Source: Dendrobates tinctorius
Taxonomy: Eukaryota
NCBI RefSeq assembly: GCF_039654945.1
Contig: NW_027361834.1
Location: 3,968,001-4,032,000 of the forward strand
Direction: 5' to 3'
Length of the DNA: 64,000 nt
Part shown: positions 50,801-63,317 of the stretch, in pieces
Numbering within the stretch: position 1 is the stretch's first letter
Layout: each line of letters begins with the position of its first letter
Notes under the pieces: model-generated
Told to the model about the DNA's origin: nothing
Databases searched by the model: none
Seen by the model: only the letters and a program-made list of their open reading frames with translations
Position numbers and translations under genes: made by a program

Positions 50801-50891
50801 GTTCTATGATCAACCTCCGACCCTTCCTTCTGATGTCTGCTCCTTCTGACATGGATATATTCTCAAGGTCCATACAAGAAGATGTCATAAC

Positions 50892-53800
50892 TAGTGTTGA
50901 GCATTCCGATACCGCAAGTATCGGGTATCGGCCGATACTTGCTGTATCGGAATTCCGATACCGACTTCCGATATTTTTTCAATATCGGAATTCGGCATCG
51001 GAATCGGAAGTTCAAAGTTGATTGACAGACTGACGTCATCATGATGCGCGGTGTGTGCGCATCATGATGCTCCGTCATTTCGGGCCTTCCGGGGGTCTCT
51101 GCCGGCCTGCCGGGGGGCTGTGCCGGCCTGCCGGGGGGCTGTGTGGACTGCCCGGGGTCTGTACCGGCCTGCCGGGGGGCTGTGCCGGCCTGCCGGTGGT
51201 CTGTGCACCCTGTGGGGGTCTGTACCGGCCTGCCGGGGGGCTGTGCCGGCCTGCCGGTGGTCTGTGCACCCTGTGGGGGTCTGTACCGGCCTGCCGGGGG
51301 GCTGTGCCGGCCTGCCGGGGGGCTGTGCTGATGTCCGGGGGTCTGTGCAAGCATTGTCCGATGGGACTACAAGTCCCATCGGGCGATGCCTGCTACCATG
51401 ACAGTGATTGACACATTAGCCAATGATGGGACAGTAGTAGTCCCATCATCCGGCTAATGTGTTAAATGTTAAAAAAAAAAAAAAATACTACATACATACT
51501 ACATACATACTACATGCTACATACATACTACATATATACTACATACATGCTACATACATGCTACATACATACTGCATGCTACATACATACTACATACATA
51601 CTACATACATACTACATGCATGCTACATACATACTACATGCATGCTACATACATACTACATGCATGCTACATGCATGCTACATACATACTACATGCTACA
51701 TACATACCACATACATACTACATACATACTACATACTACATATATACTACATGCATGCTACATACATACTACATGCTACATACATACCACATACATACTA
51801 CATACATGCTACATACTACATACATACTACATACATACTACATACATACTACATGCATGCTACATACATACTACATGCATGCTACATACATACTACATGC
51901 ATGCTACATACATACTACATGCTACATACATACCACATACATACTACATACATACTACATGCTACATACATACTACATATATACTACATGCATGCTACAT
52001 ACATACTACATGCTACATACATACCACATACATACTACATACATGCTACATACATACTACATATATACTACATGCATGCTACATACATACTACATATATA
52101 CTACATGCATGCTACATACATACTACATGCTACATGCATGCTACATACATACTACATACATACTACATGCTACATACATACCACATATATACTACATACA
52201 TACAATACATTCATACAATACATACATAGACATACAGTACATATAACATAGAGTAACATACTTACCAATACTTGTCACATTGTTCCCCGAAGCCATTGTC
52301 TTTTCCGGAATAAATATTAACATAACAAACCACAAAAATACTCACCCACGATCCGAAGCAGTCCACGAGTGTGTCCCACGACGATCTTGGGTAGAGAACT
52401 GCAGCATCAGATGATGCTGCCGTTCTCTACGGGCTGCAGGAATCCAATGACGGAAGGTAGGTATCCTTCCGCACTGTATTCCTCCGCCACTTGAAAAAAA
52501 AAAGTCCCTAGTCTCACTTTATGCCATTGCTGCGTGGGAAATTCCCACACAGCAATGGCATAAAGTGAGAATAGGGACTTTTTTTTTTTTTAAGTGGCGG
52601 AGGAATACAGTGCGGAAGGATACCTACCTTCCGTCATTGGATTCCTGCAGCCCGTAGAGAACGGCAGCATCAGCTGATGCTGCCGTTCTCTACCCAAGAT
52701 CGTCGTGGGACACACTCGTGGACTGCTTCGGATCGTGGGTGAGTATTTTTGTGGTTTGTTATGTTAATATTTATTCCGGAAAAGACAATGGCTTCGGGGA
52801 ACAATGTGACAAGTATTGGTAAGTATGTTACTCTATGTTATATGTACTGTATGTCTATGTATGTATTGTATGAATGTATTGTATGTATGTAGTATATATG
52901 TGGTATGTATGTAGCATGTAGTATGTATGTAGTATGTATGTAGCATGCATGTAGCATGTAGTATGTATGTAGCATGCATGTAGTATATATGTAGTATGTA
53001 TGTAGCATGCATGTAGTATATATGTAGTATGTATGTAGCATGTATGTAGTATGTATGTGGTATGTATGTAGCATGTAGTATGTATGTAGCATGCATGTAG
53101 TATATATGTAGTATGTATGTAGCATGTAGTATGTATGTAGTATGTATGTGGTATGTATGTAGCATGTAGTATGTATGTAGCATGCATGTAGTATGTATGT
53201 AGCATGCATGTAGTATGTATGTAGCATGCATGTAGTATGTATGTAGTATGTATGTAGTATGTAGCATGTATGTAGTATGTATGTGGTATGTATGTAGCAT
53301 GTAGTATGTATGTAGCATGCATGTAGTATATATGTAGTATGTAGCATGTAGTATGTATGTAGCATGCATGTAGTATATATGTAGTATGTAGCATGTAGTA
53401 TGTATGTAGCATGCATGTAGTATGTATGTAGCATGCATGTAGTATGTATGTGGTATGTATGTAGCATGTAGTATGTATGTAGCATGCATGTAGTATATAT
53501 GTGTTATGTATGTAGCATGTAGCATGCATGTAGCATGCATGTAGTATATATGTGTTATGTATGTAGCATGTAGCATGCATGTAGCATGCATGTAGTATGT
53601 ATGTAGTATGTATGTAGTATATATGTGGTATGTATGTAGCATGTAGTATGTATGTAGCATGCAGTATGTATGTAGCATGTAGTATATATGTAGCATGCAG
53701 CATGTATGTAGCATGCATGTAGTATATATGTAGTATGTATGTAGTATATATGTAGTATGTATGTTGCATGTAGTATTTATGTAGTATGAATGTAGCATGT

Positions 53801-53902
53801 ATGTAGTATGTAGTATGAATGTAGCATGTATGTAGCATGTATGTAGTATGTAGTATGAATGTAGCATGTATGTAGTATGCATGTTGTATGTATGTAGCAT
53901 GT

Positions 53903-53935
<33 letters not shown>

Positions 53936-54270
53936 TTTAACACATTAGCCGGATGATGGGACTACTACTGTCCCATCATTGGCTAATGTGTCAATCACTG
54001 TCATGGTAGCAGGCATCGCCCGATGGGACTTGTAGTCCCATCGGACGATGCCTGCACAGACCCCCGAAGCCTGCACAGCCCCCCGGCAGGCCGGCACAGC
54101 CCCCCGGCAGGCCGGCACAGCCCCCCGGAGCCTGCACAGCCCCCCGGCAGGCCGGCACTGCCCCCCGGCAGGCCGGCACAGCCCCCCGGCAGGCCGGCAC
54201 AGCCCACCAGAGCCTGCACAGACCACCGGCAGGCCGGCACAGCCCCCCGGCAGGCCGGCACAGACCACCT
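50892..54270. mobile_element. Foldback non-autonomous DNA element: ~3.1 kb palindrome with 21-bp GC-rich and TACA/TGTA satellites
   Basis: Left end TAGTGTTGAGCATTCCGATAC; arms mirror around GGGAAATTCCC at 52541; right TIR missing. Confidence 0.85.
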
Positions 54271-54349
54271 GAGTATTACAGAATACTGTAGATAAGCCCC
54301 TGATTGCGGTGGCCCCTGCTTATGGGGTGACAGATTCCCTTTAAATAAA

Positions 54350-54402: not shown

Positions 54403-55418
54403 TGATTATAATGATGTAGATGGAGTCATTGTGTGCTCTATAGGTCATAATTTTTGGCCTCGTATGCCTTTTTGAGGCAGACACCAAGATGGCGTCTTGG
54501 TGCCTGCCTCAAATAGGCATATAATAATGCTAACATAGAACACTGACTCTGCCTGCATCATTATATTCAATGTTCCTGTTGGTGCGAACATCTGAATCCC
54601 ATTCTATGGGGCTTCAGACACAAATACCGACAGGGCCACTGATCATAGTCCAACGTGAACAGTCTGAGAGGCACGGCACCGTATAGGGAATGTGTGTCTG
54701 ACTGCAGAGCCCCCATAGATAGGTTAAGCTATAAAGGAACTTTGGGCAGTGCTTCCCCCCTCCCACTACTTCTCAGGTGATGCCATATATTAGAACGCCC
54801 ACTGACCAACGGGAGAAAGGGGAAGGGGCGTCCGGCCACACCCTCAGGGGTTAAATTCTTGTGCTGGGCCGGATAATTCCTCTTCCTCCCCTGGCTGACC
54901 ATTCGAAGTTTTGTCCCACCCTCCCTCCCTTATAAATTCGCAATTGTGCTGTGCGGCTATTGTATATAATGTTTATTTAAAAAAAAAAAAATTTTGGACT
55001 ATGTTTTCATTACTTACATGATTTTGTTGTATCCAATGTCACAGCGGTAGTATGGGGGGGCAAAGGTTCGTAACCTCTCATCAGCTTCCTTACCCACTGT
55101 CAGTTATGGGGGGTTTTCGGCTCTGAGTCTGTTGAGAATTTGTATTTGCCTCTCTCGGTTTAGAATTCAATAAACTTTGACCGACCTGTTCAACCCATCC
55201 AGGCCTTTTTGTTGTTTCGTTATTATGGGATTGGTGGGAGGCGGGGAGGCACCGTTTACGTCATACGGGTCTCTGCAGTCTAAGCAGGACTGTCTTAGGA
55301 TGCCCAAGTCCTACTAGTTAATGAATGTCTCTAGAACCTTTTATAAGGGAATAATTGTCATGGCTAGATGATGACAAGGTCACAACATCTCCCACATCGG
55401 CAAGTATGTAGTCAGTAA

Positions 55419-55553
55419 AGGGAAACCTGTCACCTCGTTTTTCAGCTATAAGCTGCGGCCACTGCCTTTCTACTGCATTCTAGAATGCTGTCGATAAGCC
55501 CTGAAAGGCAGTGGCCGCAGCTTATAGCTGAAAAACGAGGTAACAGGTTGCCT
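55419..55553. mobile_element. T2/Kolobok-type MITE
   Basis: AGGGAAACCTGTCACC..GGTAACAGGTTGCCT with ~50-bp near-perfect arms and degenerate TTAA flanks. Confidence 0.7.
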
Positions 55554-55689
55554 TTATCAATGTAAGCCTATGGAGCATCAGAACAAGGCCCCATAGGCTA
55601 GTATAATAGAAGAGACTTCTCGCTCACACCGAGAGCATAGAGTGAGCCGAAGAGTCTGGAGAGCGATGAAAGGCGATTCCGACAGCTAA

Positions 55690-55921
55690 ATAGGAAAGGG
55701 TTATTTACAGTTAGAGCAGTCACACTCTGGAATGCCGACCACAAGAACTAGTAATAGCAGACACTACAACAGCTTTTAAAAAGGGCTGGATGATTTCTTC
55801 AATACACATAACATTGTGGGTTATATTTAATTTAGTGACAAAATGGACAATTGGTGGAGAAAGGTTAAACTTGATGGACCTAAGTCTTTTTTCAACCTTT
55901 GTATGTAACTATGTATCTATG
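55690..55921 (+). mobile_element. CR1-type LINE 3' end
   Basis: Encodes F-T-V-R-A-V-T-L-W-N and F-K-K-G-L-D; ends with a (CTATG)-like tail. Confidence 0.7.
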
Positions 55922-56154
55922 ACATCACATAAAAGTGGAGCTGGACAGAGCTTGATCTCAGAGAAGACAGCAGTTGGGAAGTATATTACCCTACCACACT
56001 ACAGTACATACACGTTTAGTGAAAAAAACAAAACTTCATGAGGATTCTTCAAACATGTACGACGTACAATATTGGTATGCCATATATTTCAGAAATATTC
56101 TATTACAAAGGAATATTAATTAATTCAGAATTTTTATTTCATTTTTTTAAATTA

Positions 56155-56333
56155 GGAATTCCCTATCAGTATGTCTTTGGAGTGTGGGAGGAAACCGGAG
56201 TACCCGGAGGAAACCCACGCAAACACGGGGAGAACATACAAACTCCTTGCAGATGTTTTCCTTAGTGACATTTAAACCCAGGATCCCAGTGCTGCAAAAC
56301 AACAGTGCTAACCACTGAGCCCCCGTGCTGCCC
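56155..56333 (-). mobile_element. V-SINE (tRNA-derived head plus V domain) in the kinase 3' UTR
   Basis: Minus strand GGGCAGCACGGGGGCTCAGTGGTTAGCAC...GGAGTTTGTATGTTCTCCCCGTGTTTGCGTGGGTTTCCTCCGGGTACTCCGGTTTCCTCCCAC. Confidence 0.85.
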
Positions 56334-56381
56334 AAGTACAGCTTTGATGATGGACTTGCTGTAATAGATGTATATGGTGCC

Positions 56382-59300
56382 CTAAAGACAAATTGGACAA
56401 ATGCATCTTCTGATGCTGCGAGCGGCCCTGGATAATCCACGCCGACAGGATGATATAATCCGGCGGAAGATGGATCCTAGGAGAAGAGATATAAAACTAA
56501 TTTAAGTAATGGGACTCCGTATTAGAGGATACTGCTTTGGTGTCATTGTGGCAGGACGGTAGAGAAATCTTATCCGTGCAGAGGAACAGGATCATTGTCA
56601 CTCATCATACATGTGACAATCCCACCACTGACAGAAAACATCTCCACATGAATTATTCTCACTGGCCAACATCAAACAACATAGACCTTATTATCACACT
56701 TACGTCTTCTAGGTTCTCGCTCTTCTACTATTTTGGCATTTTGCTCTTCTACCAGTTTTATTGCAGAGTTATTTTTCTTCTCAACTAGAAATTCATATAA
56801 AAAGTGAAAAAACAAGTCAATGATCATTGTCAGTCATCATACATGTGACAATCGTACCCACTGGGAGTTAACATCTCCTCCTCGTGACTAATTCTTAATC
56901 GGCGACATCAGACAACATAGACCTTATTGTCACACTTACCACTGCTAGGTTCTGTCTCTGGGACTATTTCTGGGTCTTGATCTTCTCCCAGTCTTAGTGC
57001 AGATGTATTTATTGTCTCAACTGGAAATTCATGTAAAAAAGTAAGAAAAACAAGTCAATGATCATTGTTAGTCATAGATGTGAAAATCCCACCACTGACA
57101 TATAGCGATGAGCGAGTGTGCTCGTTACTGGAGTTTTCCGAGCATGCTCGGGTGTTCTCCACATGTATTCAGGTTCTCTAGCAGTCTCAAATCATGCAGC
57201 TGCGGGGACTAAAAGTTGATTTCCGAGCACGCCCAAACTACTCAGAGAACACCCGAGCATGTTCGGAAAACTCGAGTAAAGAGCACACTCACTTATCACT
57301 ACATATAATATATCCTCCTCATGAATTATTCTCAGTTGCCGACATCATACAACATAGACCTTATTGTCACACTTACCTCTGCTAGGCTCTGTCTCTGCAA
57401 CTATTTCTGGGTCTTGTTCTTCTCCCAGTTTTAATGCAGATGTATTATTGGCCTCAACTGGAAATTCATATATAAAAGTAAGAAAAACAAGTCAATGATT
57501 ATTGTCAGTCATAGATGTGAAAATCCCACCATTGACATATAGTGATGAGCGAGTGTGTTCGTTACTCGAGTTCTCCGAGCATTTTGAGGGTGCTCATGAA
57601 TTAAGTTTTAGTCCCCGCAGCTGCATGATTTGCAGCTTCTAGACAGCCTGAATACATGTGCGGATTGCCCGTTTTTTTGGAAATCCTCACATGAATTCAG
57701 GTTCTCTAGCAGTCTCAAATCATGCAGCTGCGGGGACTAAAGCTTGATTTCCGAGCACGCCGAAACTACTCAGAGAACACCCAAGCACGTTCAGAAAACT
57801 CGAGTAAAGAGCACATTCGCTTATCACTACATATAATATCTCCTCCTTGTGAATTATTCTCAATCGCCGACATCAGACCACATAGACCTTATTGTCACAC
57901 TTACGTCTGCTAGGCTCTGTCTCTGCCACTATTTCTGGGTCTTGCTCTTCTCCCAGTTTTAATGCAGATGTATTTTTTGCCTCAACTGGAAAATTATATA
58001 AAAAAGTAAGAAAAACAAGTCAATGATAATTGTCAGTCATAGATGTGAAAATCCCACCACTGACATATATAGCGATGAGCGAGTGTGCTCGTTACTGGAG
58101 TTTTCCGAGCATGCTCGGGTGTTCTCCACATGTATTCAGGTTCTCTAGCAGTCTCAAATCATGCAGCTGCGGGGACTAAAAGTTGATTTCCGAGCACGCC
58201 CAAACTACTCAGAGAACACACGAGCATGTTCGGAAAACTCGAGTAAAGAGCACACTCACTTATCACTACATATAATATATCCTCCTCATGAATTATTCTC
58301 AGTTGCCGACATCAGACAACATAGACCTTATTGTCACACTTACCTCTGCTAGGCTCTGTCTCTGCAACTATTTCTGGGTCTTGTTCTCCCAGTTTTAATG
58401 CAGATGTATTATTGGCCTCAACTGGAAATTCATATATAAAAGTAAGAAAAACAAGTCAATGATTATTGTCAGTCATAGATGTGAAAATCCCACCATTGAC
58501 ATATAGTGATGAGCGAGTGTGTTCGTTACTCGAGTTTTCCGAGCATTTTGAGGGTGCTCATGAATTAAGTTTTAGTCCCCGCAGCTGCATGATTTGCAGC
58601 TTCTAGGCAGCCTGAATAAATGTGGGGATTGCCCGTTTTTTTGGAAATCCTCACATAAATTCAGGTTCTCTAGCAGTCTCAAATCATGCAGCTGCGGGGA
58701 CTAAAGCTTGATTTCTGAGCACGCCGAAACTACTCAGAGAACACCCAAGCATGTTCAGAAAACTCGAGTAAAGAGCACATTCACTTATCACTACATATAA
58801 TATCTTCTCCTTGTGAATTATTCTCAATCGCCGACATCAGACCACATAGACCTTATTGTCACACTTACGTCTGCTAGGCTCTGTCTCTGCCACTATTTCT
58901 GGGTCTTGCTCTTCTCCCAGTTTTAATGCAGATGTATTTTTTGCCTCAACTGGAAAATTATATAAAAAAGTAAGAAAAACAAGTCAATGATAATTGTCAG
59001 TCATAGATGTGAAAATCCCACATTGACATATAATATATCCTCCTCCTCAATTATTCTCAGTCTCCGACATCAGACCACATAGACCTTATTGTCACACTTA
59101 CCTCTGCTAGGCTCTGTCTCTGCGACTATTTCTGGGTCTTGATCTTCTCCCAGTTTTAATGCAGAGGTATTTTTTGTCTCATCTTGAAATTCAGATAAAA
59201 AAGTAAGAAAAACAAGTCAGTGATCATTGTCAGTCATAGATGTGAAAATCCCACCATTGACATATAATATATCCTCCTCCTCAATTATTCTGTCTCCGAC

Positions 59301-62300
59301 ATTAGACAACATAGACCTTATTGTCACACTTACCTCTGCTAGGCTCTGTCTCTGCGACTATTTCAGGGTCTTGATCTTCTCCCAGTTTTAATGCAGAGGT
59401 ATTTTTTGTCTCATCTTGAAATTCATACAAAATAAGTAAGAAAAACAAGTCAGTGATCATTGTCAGTCATAGATGTGAAAATCCCACCATTGACATATAA
59501 TATATCCTGCTCGTGAATTATTCTGTCGCCGACATCAGACATCAAAAACCTTATTGTCACACTTACCTCTGCTCGGTTCTGTCTCTGGGACTATTTTTGG
59601 GTCTTCATCTTCTCCCAGTTTTAATGCAGATGTATTTATTGTCTCAACTGGAAATTCATGTAAAAAAGTAACATATAATATATCCTCCTTGTGAATTATT
59701 CTCAGTCGCTGACATCAGACCACATAGACATTATTGTCACACTTACCTCTGCTAGGTTCTGTCTTTACTACTATTTCTGGTTTTTGCTCTTCCAGTTTTA
59801 GTGCAGATGTATTTTTCATATGAACTGGAAAATCATACATAAAATGAAGAAAAACAGGTCAATGATAAACTCCTATAAGATTAGAGTCTTATCTTTATGG
59901 TTGCTGCTGCCGGATTGCTATGAGCGCAACCCTGTGGTCGGCGTTCATAGCACACCTATAATTCTGCTACATAGAGGTGATCTATGCATCTCTTCTATGT
60001 AGCAGAGACGATCGATTTATGGCAGTTTCTAGCCTCCCACGGAGGCTATTGAAGCATGCCAAAATAAAAAAATTGTTTTAAAAATATTAAAAAATGTAAA
60101 AAAACAAAAGTTTAAATCACCCCTCTTTCGCCCCATTCAAAATTAAACAATAAAAAAATCAAACCTACACATATTTGGTATTGCAGTGTTCAGAATCACC
60201 CGATCTATCAATAAAAAAAGGATTAACCCTATTGCTAAACGGCTGAGCGAGAGAACAAATCGAAACGCCATAATTAAGTTTTTTTTGCCACCGCAATATT
60301 GCATTAATATGAAATAACAAGCGATCAAAAGAACGCATCTGCATAAAAGTGTTATCATTAAAAACGTCAGCTCGGCGCGCAAAAACTAAATCCTCGCCCA
60401 ACCAGAGATCCCAAAAAGTGGAGACGCTACGGGTCTCAGAAAAGGGCGCAATTTATTTTTTTTTTTTTGCAAAGTCTGGAATTTTTTTTCACCACTTAGA
60501 TAAAAAAGAACCTAGACATGTTTGGTGTCTATGAACTCGTAATGACTTGTAGAATCAAAGTCACAGGTCAGTTTTAGCATTTAGTGAACCTAGCAAAAAA
60601 GCCAATCAAAAATTAAGTGTGGGATTGCATTTATTTTGCAATTTTACTGCACTTGGAATTTTTTATCCTGTTTTCTGTTACATGACATGGTAAAACCAAA
60701 GATATTGTTCAAAAGTACAACTCGTCCCACAAAAAATAAGCCCTCATACGGCAATATTGACCTAAAAATAAAAAACTTATGGCTCTGGAAAGAAGGGGAA
60801 AGAAAAACGAAAACGCAAAATCGAAAAAAAGATTCGGGCGTTAAGGGGTTAAAACATCTGTGGCACATTAAGGGTATATATAGGGTTAGTTTGGGGCCTG
60901 ATTGAGCCATGGGCAGAGTATTCGTGATCAGTATCAGGCACCAGACTGTATGGCCCCTTATACCTTTTAATGCGCAGCACATAAGAGTGAGAATTTTATA
61001 CAGTAAAGTGTTGGATTGTTGATTATTTTAAAGGCACAAAAAAGCAGTGATTTTCTGAGCCCTCATGTAACATTTACATTACACCTTATGATCAGTGGCG
61101 ACAACAAGATGTCCTATAGACCTGCACATACCTGGCAATATGGGAGAGGGTGACTTGTTGTTTTCAGTAGTGAAGCACTGATTATCACCATCATTTCCAG
61201 TTGGAGAAGATTCTTTCTGCCTGTTTAGTAGAAAAAAAAAATAAATTACATGTGAAAGCAATGAAAAATAAAAAGACTCCTTTTTTATGGGCAATTAGGA
61301 CACTTGGACAAAATGAAGGGTATACCTTGCACAGGACTGCCTTCTGTCAGCAAGAATGAAGAATAACTAGTAATAAAGGGCTTTAATGAAATGGAAATGA
61401 AAGGCTGGTCATAATGATCAACTGTTATCACCAGCGTTATCACAAGCCAGACATTACAGTGATGATCAATCATGGGGGCGGTGAGTTCTGGATTTAGTAT
61501 TGTGTCATATGCGTCTTGTATTTGGTATTCTGAAGATATGTCAGTACTATACCCTGTAATAATCTACTCACACGTCTGAGTGTTTTGTGCTGGTCTCTAG
61601 AGAGCTATCTGGAGATGCCTCATGATGTTCATCTCTCATCATCATGGTATTGGGGTCATATAGCTAAAATACACAGAGTAAAATTAATTATATATATATA
61701 GTATTTTCATACTATTATAGTTATAGTTTTGTGGATTTGCTGATCATATACATACCTTAGAAAGTCTTTGAGAAGATGATACATAGTTTAGACTTTCTGG
61801 CCAATCACTGACCTCCTCACTTGTGTCATCCTCATCTGAATCCATATGTTTGGGTCTCTCAATGCCAGCTACAAAGTACAAGTATTATCAAAGATTATTA
61901 ATATAATCACAGACAGTCACCAAGTTATTACTAATAATGATGGGAACATATTGTCACATAAAATGAAAGACAAGACAAATGGCAACTTTAACCAGATGAC
62001 GTCTCATTCTACTTACTGAGAAAGTAGCGGGTGTCCTCCTCTGACGTAATATCTGGCCTTAACGTTGGCATATTTTGAAGGTTCTCAAAGTCTAACTCAC
62101 TCAGGAATGGATGACTCTTGATTTCATTTGCTCCTCCTGGAAACGGAAGACAAGAAAAAAGTGATCCAGACAATGTTAGGAAGACTGTACATTTTAAGTT
62201 AATCTAAACTGAAGATATAGAAGATCCAAAATATACTGTAAGTCATGGCATGAAGAATGGGGAATGGACAAGACGATAACGCAGAGACCTCAGTGTTTAT

Positions 62301-63317
62301 CCTCATGGAAATGATCTATTTGTCAGGTCACAGAGGAGCTATAAGTCATTATTAATACTACTATATATATTACCTGTCCCGAGTCTATGTGTTGGATCTT
62401 TTATGAGTAGCTGAGTAATGATGCTTTGAGCTTTGGGATGAATAGCATGCTTTTTAAATTTCAAAGTGATGTCATCTGTTATGTAAAAAGTAAATATTAC
62501 AGAAAAGAAAGTCTCTACATTTACTATCATTTAAAAAAACTCATCAAAAGCAACAAGTAACTAAATCAAAGAATGAACATAGCAACTGAACCAAATTACT
62601 GTGGCATCACACAGCATCAGAATATTTTACTTACCTGTGGTGATACTGTTAAAAATAATACTTTTGTATCTTCCTTTAAATGGCACATCACCAGTAAGAA
62701 ATTTATACATGATGATCCCTAGTGACCACCAGTCAATAGGCCTTCCGTAGCGCTCCCCTAAGATGACTTCTGGGGCTATATAATGCAAGGTGCCAATCTT
62801 CTGAAAACCAACAGAACAATAAGAAGATGATCAATGAAAATAACTGTGACAAATAATATCAGTGGAAAAGTTTTCTATGTGAGAAAATATCAGAGAAGCA
62901 GAAATAGATCAGATCTGTAAAGAATAAGTTTTTTATGTATAGCTAACCCCATCATCAGGAAACTCTCTGGTGATGTCTTCAGTTTGAGCCTTGTAAATGT
63001 CTGATGTTGGTCTCATGAGTCCGAGTTTTGAAAGCCCAAAATCGGTGACTTTGATATGTCCAGTTGATGATATCATGAGGCTGTAAAAGAAAAGATATTG
63101 TCAGCCCTAAGTAATAACCCATAGACTGTATACCAAACTATAACTGTCTCCCTTTATTATACTGCAGCGTTCACTTACTTTCCAGGCTTCAGGTCTCGGT
63201 GAACCACACCATAGCTGTGCAGATATTCCACAGCAACAACCGTTTCTGCAAGGTACCTGCGGGCCCAGGCGAGGGATAAATGACCATATAACTTTAAGAG
63301 ACTGCCACAGTCTCCTC
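56382..63317 (-). CDS. Divergent MAST-family (AGC) Ser/Thr kinase, 3' portion of 19 exons; N-lobe lies beyond the window
   Basis: Exons 63179-63317 (HRDLKPGN), 62948-63080 (DFG), 62635-62800 (APE, DWWSLG), 62374-62475, 62017-62136 (EEDTRYF), 61756-61868, 61572-61663, 61132-61220, ten repeat exons in 56704-59824, last exon 56382-56476 ending TAG. All are AG/GT bounded, phase-compatible and stop-free (~617 codons). Kinase exon junctions match the MAST pattern as recalled. Confidence 0.88.
56600..59870 (-). repeat. Tandem array of ten exon+intron units (basic unit ~235 bp; four units enlarged by a MITE)
   Basis: Recurrent CACACTTAC-[78-81 nt]-CTG/CTT/CTA; higher-order ~965-bp duplication of 57021-57985 and 57986-58949. 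Confidence 0.95.
59880..60848 (+). mobile_element. piggyBac-type non-autonomous element, right part, in a kinase intron
   Basis: Ends TTAAGGGG|TTAA; homologous to 9200-9795. Confidence 0.65.

Follow-up and report, generated by a model that had tools for sequence, protein, structure and literature searches.

A likely array of ten tandem cassette exons giving an acidic tail to a MAST-derived kinase of the poison frog Dendrobates tinctorius

The length of the PEVK segment of titin is tuned by differential exon inclusion. This segment is encoded by many short repetitive exons that have undergone tandem duplication, with transposable elements implicated in their remodelling, and is hard to annotate (PMC6469411). 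Phase-symmetric exons that encode intrinsic disorder have been described as evolutionary modules (PMC3632108), and the general trends of tandem exon duplications, which are mostly mutually exclusive pairs, have also been described (PMC9013439). Here we analyse a 64,000-nt stretch of D. tinctorius DNA (contig NW_027361834.1; the window), in which an apparent satellite at 56704–59824 belongs to a kinase gene on the minus strand. The array is likely to consist of ten tandem, phase-symmetric cassette exons of this MAST-derived gene, which would encode an in-frame acidic tail and would have grown by unequal crossing-over. That the feature is real and coding has a high probability.

The array resembles titin PEVK in that short repetitive exons encode a disordered, charged segment and expand and contract by tandem exon duplication; it differs in that titin is a giant structural protein with another repeat sequence and an established mechanical function, whereas any function of the frog tail is a proposed one. 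With the modular exons and tandem duplications of PMC3632108 and PMC9013439 it shares 1-1 symmetry, predicted disorder and tandem duplication as a frame-safe modular change, but the frog array is additive, with up to 18 near-identical cassette exons. Like vertebrate MAST1–4, the frog family has an AGC kinase domain, an acidic segment after the C-tail (DSDEDDTSE...SSSQRLSK) and, in full-length members, DUF1908. Unlike MAST1–4, it has neither the PDZ domain nor the long C-terminal region, and carries instead the acidic exon-repeat array and a basic, Cys-rich end of 31 residues. Dendrobatid models of the MAST1/3/4-like type (XP_073421252.1, here P0042, and XP_073421247.1, here P0019, from D. tinctorius; XP_077127997.1 and LOC143781772 from Ranitomeya variabilis) are like the window locus in their linker exons, unit borders, divergent last unit and terminal exon. 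The window locus has ten units compared to 5–7 in its closest D. tinctorius relatives, through extra one- and two-unit duplications.

Splice signals and reading frame

All ten minus-strand units, read over 56500–60000, were verified on the sequence. Units 1 and 6 have 78 nt, the other eight 81 nt. Directly 5' of each unit is an AG (CAG in seven, AAG in units 3 and 4, TAG in unit 10) with a pyrimidine-rich tract upstream, and directly 3' of all ten is GTAAGTGT. Every unit has a single stop-free frame, with conserved stops in the other two frames, and its phase is 1-1: the first two bases finish a codon and the last base opens one. These results bear out the initial annotation, which had proposed ten stop-free exons of phase 1-1 bounded by AG and GTAAGT. 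It had also described the exon length changes as 3-nt events, and both differences are indeed 3-nt gaps in the same alignment column, in a slippage-prone GAA/GAG context. Each unit encodes an acidic segment of 26 or 27 residues, whose consensus allows E or D at one inner position.

When exon 61220–61132, the ten units and the last exon at 56476–56382 are concatenated, they form one open reading frame (ORF) with its sole stop at the end, in agreement with the earlier proposal that the array joins both flanking exons in frame and adds 268 residues. Within these 268 residues, 67 are acidic and 32 are basic, giving a net charge of –35. The units thus have the properties of a cassette array: a shared phase, lengths divisible by 3, splice signals and in-frame joins on both flanks. 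Because every unit is of phase 1-1 and a multiple of 3 nt, gain, loss or skipping of units would be frame-safe. Tandem Repeats Finder gives a period of 233–236 bp, and the array introns 1 to 9 are 99, 152, 151, 152, 447, 358, 447, 356 and 155 nt long. No RNA family was matched in an Rfam scan of 55000–60050. The repeat exons, the terminal exon and the 3' end are as follows, with identities to units of related frog proteins.

59747–59824, minus strand: repeat exon 1, 78 nt; divergent edge unit, 92% to unit 1 of D. tinctorius P0042 and P0019
59567–59647, minus strand: repeat exon 2, 81 nt; 96% to P0019 unit 2; upstream intron 99 nt after a 53-bp deletion
59334–59414, minus strand: repeat exon 3, 81 nt; AAG acceptor, D-type first codon, 100% to P0019 unit 3
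59102–59182, minus strand: repeat exon 4, 81 nt; young duplicate of exon 3, one synonymous change apart
58869–58949, minus strand: repeat exon 5, 81 nt; consensus type, opens copy A of a two-unit higher-order repeat, 100% to P0019 unit 5
58344–58421, minus strand: repeat exon 6, 78 nt; one Glu codon fewer
57905–57985, minus strand: repeat exon 7, 81 nt; identical to exon 5, opens copy B of the higher-order repeat
57377–57457, minus strand: repeat exon 8, 81 nt; equal to exon 6 plus 3 nt
56940–57020, minus strand: repeat exon 9, 81 nt; 93% to P0019 unit 6
56704–56784, minus strand: repeat exon 10, 81 nt; divergent last unit, 100% to the last unit of P0019 and 96% to last units of Ranitomeya
56382–56476, minus strand: terminal coding exon, 31 residues and stop; 9 Arg/Lys, 0 acidic residues, 4 Cys
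56133–56138, minus strand: candidate poly(A) signal AATAAA, 244 nt past the stop codon, a pattern match only

The terminal exon is conserved at 90–100% in family proteins. Between its stop codon and the AATAAA at 56138–56133, the minus-strand 3' untranslated region (56150–56340) holds a fragment resembling a short interspersed nuclear element, ggtttcctcccacactccaaagacatactgatagg, which we take to be akin to a common anuran interspersed repeat. Within the array, intron 1 (59648–59746) has 99 nt compared to ~152 nt elsewhere, owing to a 53-bp deletion. The deletion took away a conserved segment, ggtgggattttcacatctatgactgacaat, which is kept upstream of the acceptor in all other units and has a branch-point-like CTGAC motif. 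A further intronic stretch, at 60059–60095, is T-rich.

Upstream of the array, eight minus-strand exons with GT-AG introns encode an AGC kinase C-lobe, the C-terminal extension and an acidic linker.

63179–63317, minus strand: kinase exon, GGDCGS...HRDLKPG with the catalytic loop; Pkinase match; first exon of the gene inside the window
62948–63080, minus strand: kinase exon, DFG motif
62635–62800, minus strand: kinase exon, APE motif; Pkinase match at 8e-13
62374–62475, minus strand: kinase exon, DITLKFKK...HRLGTG, from the spliced reconstruction
62017–62136, minus strand: exon of the AGC C-terminal extension, ...EEDTRYF; 100% identical to D. tinctorius paralogues
61756–61868, minus strand: linker exon, ...SSSQRLSK; MAST-type acidic segment after the kinase
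61572–61663, minus strand: linker exon, ...KHSDV
61132–61220, minus strand: linker exon ending in phase 1, joined in frame to the array; 89–97% to family proteins

In the spliced reconstruction the kinase motifs HRDLKPGN, DFG and APE are intact, and the window contains the C-lobe only. The reconstruction is identical to the RefSeq protein P0042 at 306 of 318 positions (96%). No database protein of exactly the window locus was found, and by this comparison the locus appears to be a paralogue or allele of the P0042 gene. Membership in MASTL/Greatwall was considered and rejected: the kinase domain is not split, with ~35 residues between DFG and APE in the reconstruction. Greatwall is one among many AGC matches in the PDB.

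Relatives in dendrobatid frogs

We aligned the ten units, each extended at both ends by two or three codons from the introns, and searched the resulting profile against 1.84 billion representative proteins. Its clear relatives are solely dendrobatid, from R. variabilis, R. imitator and D. tinctorius; there are strong matches at E values of 1e-57 and 2e-52 and a further one at 1e-10 (P0004), and the remaining matches, down to E ~1e-3, are unrelated repeat proteins. The matches to the relatives span profile positions 3–29, which is exactly the exon part, and leave the intron-derived flanking codons unmatched. In these proteins, RefSeq and GenBank models named "MAST 1/3/4-like", the units adjoin at the predicted exon borders (...EPSR running directly into VE.KNTSALK...), and the same basic, Cys-rich terminal exon comes after them. 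The exon reading is thereby upheld by annotated proteins of three species, in which units of 26 or 27 residues meet at these borders.

A search restricted to the tail yielded 26 protein clusters at 90% identity from the same three species, which share abutting units and the terminal exon. Counted with a hidden Markov model of the unit, copy number varies among paralogues and species from 1 to 18 units per protein, with R. variabilis models reaching 18. One R. variabilis gene has isoforms of 6, 4 and 4 units, which do not lack the same ones; another cluster forms a series of 5, 6, 9, 10, 11, 13, 16, 17 and 18 units, and one isoform pair of 769 and 715 residues differs by two units. The initial annotation had suggested that the tail varies by exon skipping and by unequal crossover. 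The first suggestion is mirrored by these RefSeq isoforms, which differ by whole units, and the second is borne out by the range of 1–18 units across the family and with a 97.8%-identical two-unit duplication in the window. Outside this group, a protein of Anomaloglossus baeobatrachus (Aromobatidae; P0067) has a single unit, which is more divergent and precedes the same terminal motif, and repeat exon 10 is similar to this single unit. The 26-residue variant of the unit is also found in D. tinctorius and R. variabilis proteins and, because it is common to Ranitomeya, is old.

The full-length family members P0001, P0013 and P0022 contain DUF1908 (PF08926) at 45–51 bits, above the Pfam cut-off; the corresponding region of the window gene lies beyond 64000. 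A Pkinase domain is likewise present in full-length members, and no PDZ domain was found in P0013, P0001, P0042 or P0022. The window gene has none either: from the kinase to the stop its ORF consists of the linker exons, ten repeats and the terminal exon only. The presence of DUF1908 and Pkinase and the lack of PDZ therefore indicate a kinase family that is MAST-derived but not canonical MAST1–4. We found no paper on MAST kinases of poison frogs.

Some of the gene models have irregularities of their own. Several RefSeq paralogues (P0019, P0034, P0042 and other D. tinctorius and R. variabilis proteins) carry intron-derived residues at unit borders, such as ...EPSRGKF... and ...EPSRDEFPV..., and the start ATG of P0019 lies inside an intron corresponding to window position ~63405. 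These features, like the endings of some models within repeat introns, look like annotation compromises or intron retention. P0002 (CAJ0964372.1, R. imitator) is chimeric, combining a Tc3-type transposase helix-turn-helix, a MAST-like kinase with four units and a reverse transcriptase/RNase H, and is probably an annotation merge with neighbouring transposons.

Selection, splicing and expression

The three youngest duplicate pairs differ by one substitution, a synonymous one, over 240 nt of exon and by 24 over 953 nt of intron (P=0.025, one-sided Fisher test). In these pairs the indel in the exons is of 3 nt, and the gaps in the introns cover 3 and 2 alignment columns. Among the inner units pN/pS, the ratio of nonsynonymous to synonymous differences, is 0.15–0.6, and third codon positions are the most variable, with 19 minimal changes compared to 11–12 at the other positions. 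The signal of purifying selection on the exons is modest. This codon-position bias and the exon/intron contrast also argue against a reading that we consider highly improbable: a non-coding tandem repeat, or satellite, would make up this 3' part of the gene, and its exon-like look and the database models would be gene-prediction artefacts. Conservation of the whole 233-bp unit, introns included, would fit such a satellite, as would the fact that the homologues are automatic models. It is contradicted by the recurrence of the same borders, phase and terminal exon in three species and two annotation sources (NCBI RefSeq and the R. imitator GenBank submission), by isoform series that differ by whole units, and by the outgroup protein with a single unit at the same position.

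Several observations weigh against a ten-exon tail under selection at this locus. Over all units, mean exon divergence is about equal to intron divergence, and the stop-free frame is not significant alone (P 0.12–0.27 given ~30–42 substitutions). We therefore rejected the lack of stops as stand-alone proof of selection, and the earlier argument for selection on the reading frame, drawn from the window alone, is weaker than it was put. The kinase N-lobe and N-terminus lie beyond coordinate 64000, so intactness is judged on the 3' part of the gene only. The homologous proteins are all automatic gene models, and seven of the paralogue models read on into a repeat intron and meet a stop after GKCDNKV.VV, which could reflect incomplete splicing or truncated models. 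The AAG acceptors of units 3 and 4 and the 53 bp missing from the intron before unit 2 suggest that some units are perhaps poorly spliced. Finally, transcript-derived protein fragments were not found: the 48-residue stop-free read-through of one unit gave no candidates, and a search with the P0019 tail (140–446 residue range) gave three NCBI proteins, none from Logan or transcript sources.

Two alternatives draw on these points. It is possible, although we do not favour it, that the exons of the family are real and most transcripts of the window locus carry a subset of units or end inside the array, so that 268 residues would be a maximum. The RefSeq isoforms of paralogous genes that skip units, the seven read-through models, the AAG acceptors and the shortened intron are all in keeping with this. 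On the other hand, all ten units have perfect GTAAGT donors, polypyrimidine tracts and open frames, and R. variabilis models include up to 18 units. The second alternative, which we regard as unlikely, is that the window copy is a silent or decaying paralogue, a young pseudogene of a large tandem family that still looks intact through recent duplication. Such a copy would fit a family of this large size, in which many models, on several scaffolds, are partial or truncated; it would also fit the similar divergence of exons and introns, the non-significant lack of stops and the missing exact database protein. However, each of the 19 coding exons in the window has an open frame, with GT-AG introns between them, and the youngest duplicates have fewer changes in exons than in introns. 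Words of the 6-kb stretch also occur in 19 probable RNA runs, which contain 5–16% of the sampled words; the exons make up ~22% of that stretch. This word content is at most suggestive and is compatible with expression of the locus. Returning to the array of ten cassette exons, we infer that the window locus is transcribed and that all ten units are included.

History of the array and the predicted tail

Apart from the extra duplications, the window units are colinear with the seven units of P0019: units 1, 2, 3, 9 and 10 correspond to P0019 units 1, 2, 3, 6 and 7, and units 5–8 to P0019 units 4–5. Units 3 and 4 represent a young one-unit duplication. Units 5–6 and 7–8, with their introns, are the two copies of a higher-order repeat, and a sequence resembling a miniature inverted-repeat transposable element (MITE) lies at the same intron position after all four units 5–8.

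57021–58949, minus strand: higher-order repeat, a 964/965-bp two-unit block (exon, MITE intron, exon, deleted-MITE intron) present twice at 97.8% identity
58506–58792, strand not assigned: MITE-like insertion of 287 bp in intron 5, with terminal inverted repeats of ~35 bp and TATATGT at both flanks
58072–58267, strand not assigned: 196-bp MITE derivative with internal deletion, in intron 6

A second copy of the 287-bp MITE is found at 57542–57828 in intron 7, and a second copy of the 196-bp derivative at 57105–57300 in intron 8. Because the MITE occupies one shared intron position and is full-length in introns 5 and 7 but deleted in introns 6 and 8, the order of events was MITE insertion, unit duplication, internal deletion and two-unit duplication. 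Divergence is greatest in the first and last units, and the last unit is kept across genera at 96–100%; divergent ends are the pattern expected if unequal crossing-over homogenises the interior of an array. Since the Anomaloglossus protein has one unit, the ancestral gene probably carried one such exon. The array would then have arisen from this exon by unequal crossing-over of a 233-bp exon-plus-intron unit, the latest steps at the window locus being the one-unit duplication that gave units 3 and 4 and the two-unit, MITE-carrying duplication of units 5–6 into 7–8.

Repeats of another kind are found elsewhere in the window. Within 51000–54300 there is a near-palindrome with arms at 51701–52503 and 52581–53383, which are 95% complementary and 77 nt apart. 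Short tandem repeats make up its arms and produce long spurious ORFs (TYILH...); it is flanked at ~50860–51410 and 53945–54295 by G+C-rich proline/arginine-like repeats.

The structure of the tail was predicted with AlphaFold2 for the paralogue P0012, using a shallow family alignment of 16 sequences. The repeats have a predicted local distance difference test (pLDDT) score of 33–46 and no secondary structure, and the terminal exon forms a helix at residues 239–265 with a pLDDT of 52–61. The window array itself falls on the disordered side of the Uversky charge-hydropathy boundary. Both prediction and composition thus support the proposal in the initial annotation that the repeat tail is disordered. 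The spliced array would place 268 residues between the C-terminal linker of the kinase and the predicted terminal helix of the 31-residue basic, Cys-rich end, and the length of this tail could be changed both genetically and by splicing. It may act as a length-tunable acidic spacer, or it may interact electrostatically with a basic C-terminus that is palmitoylated or binds membranes. A bolder proposal, of which we are doubtful, is that unit number, from 1 to at least 18, is a selected and tunable parameter in a strongly expanded, fast-evolving and lineage-specific family of PDZ-less, MAST-derived poison-frog kinases. Adjusted by unequal crossing-over between paralogues or alleles and by regulated skipping, it would determine how far a palmitoylatable polybasic C-terminal helix can reach or how strongly it is auto-inhibited by electrostatics. 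If this were true, the tail would be to a kinase what the PEVK length ruler is to titin.

The array had initially been called hidden, a description that does not hold, as NCBI automatic annotation already models the architecture in paralogues. The general mechanism is also known, and the advance is descriptive, not conceptual. Sequence that looks like a satellite is in all likelihood coding, and the growth of a disordered tail can be documented in ordered steps: MITE insertion, internal deletion and two-unit duplication. The locus suggests that MAST-derived kinases have undergone a so far undescribed expansion, specific to dendrobatoids, in which the PDZ region has been swapped for an acidic repeat and a basic, Cys-rich end, and this family may provide a model for length-tunable linkers in signalling proteins.

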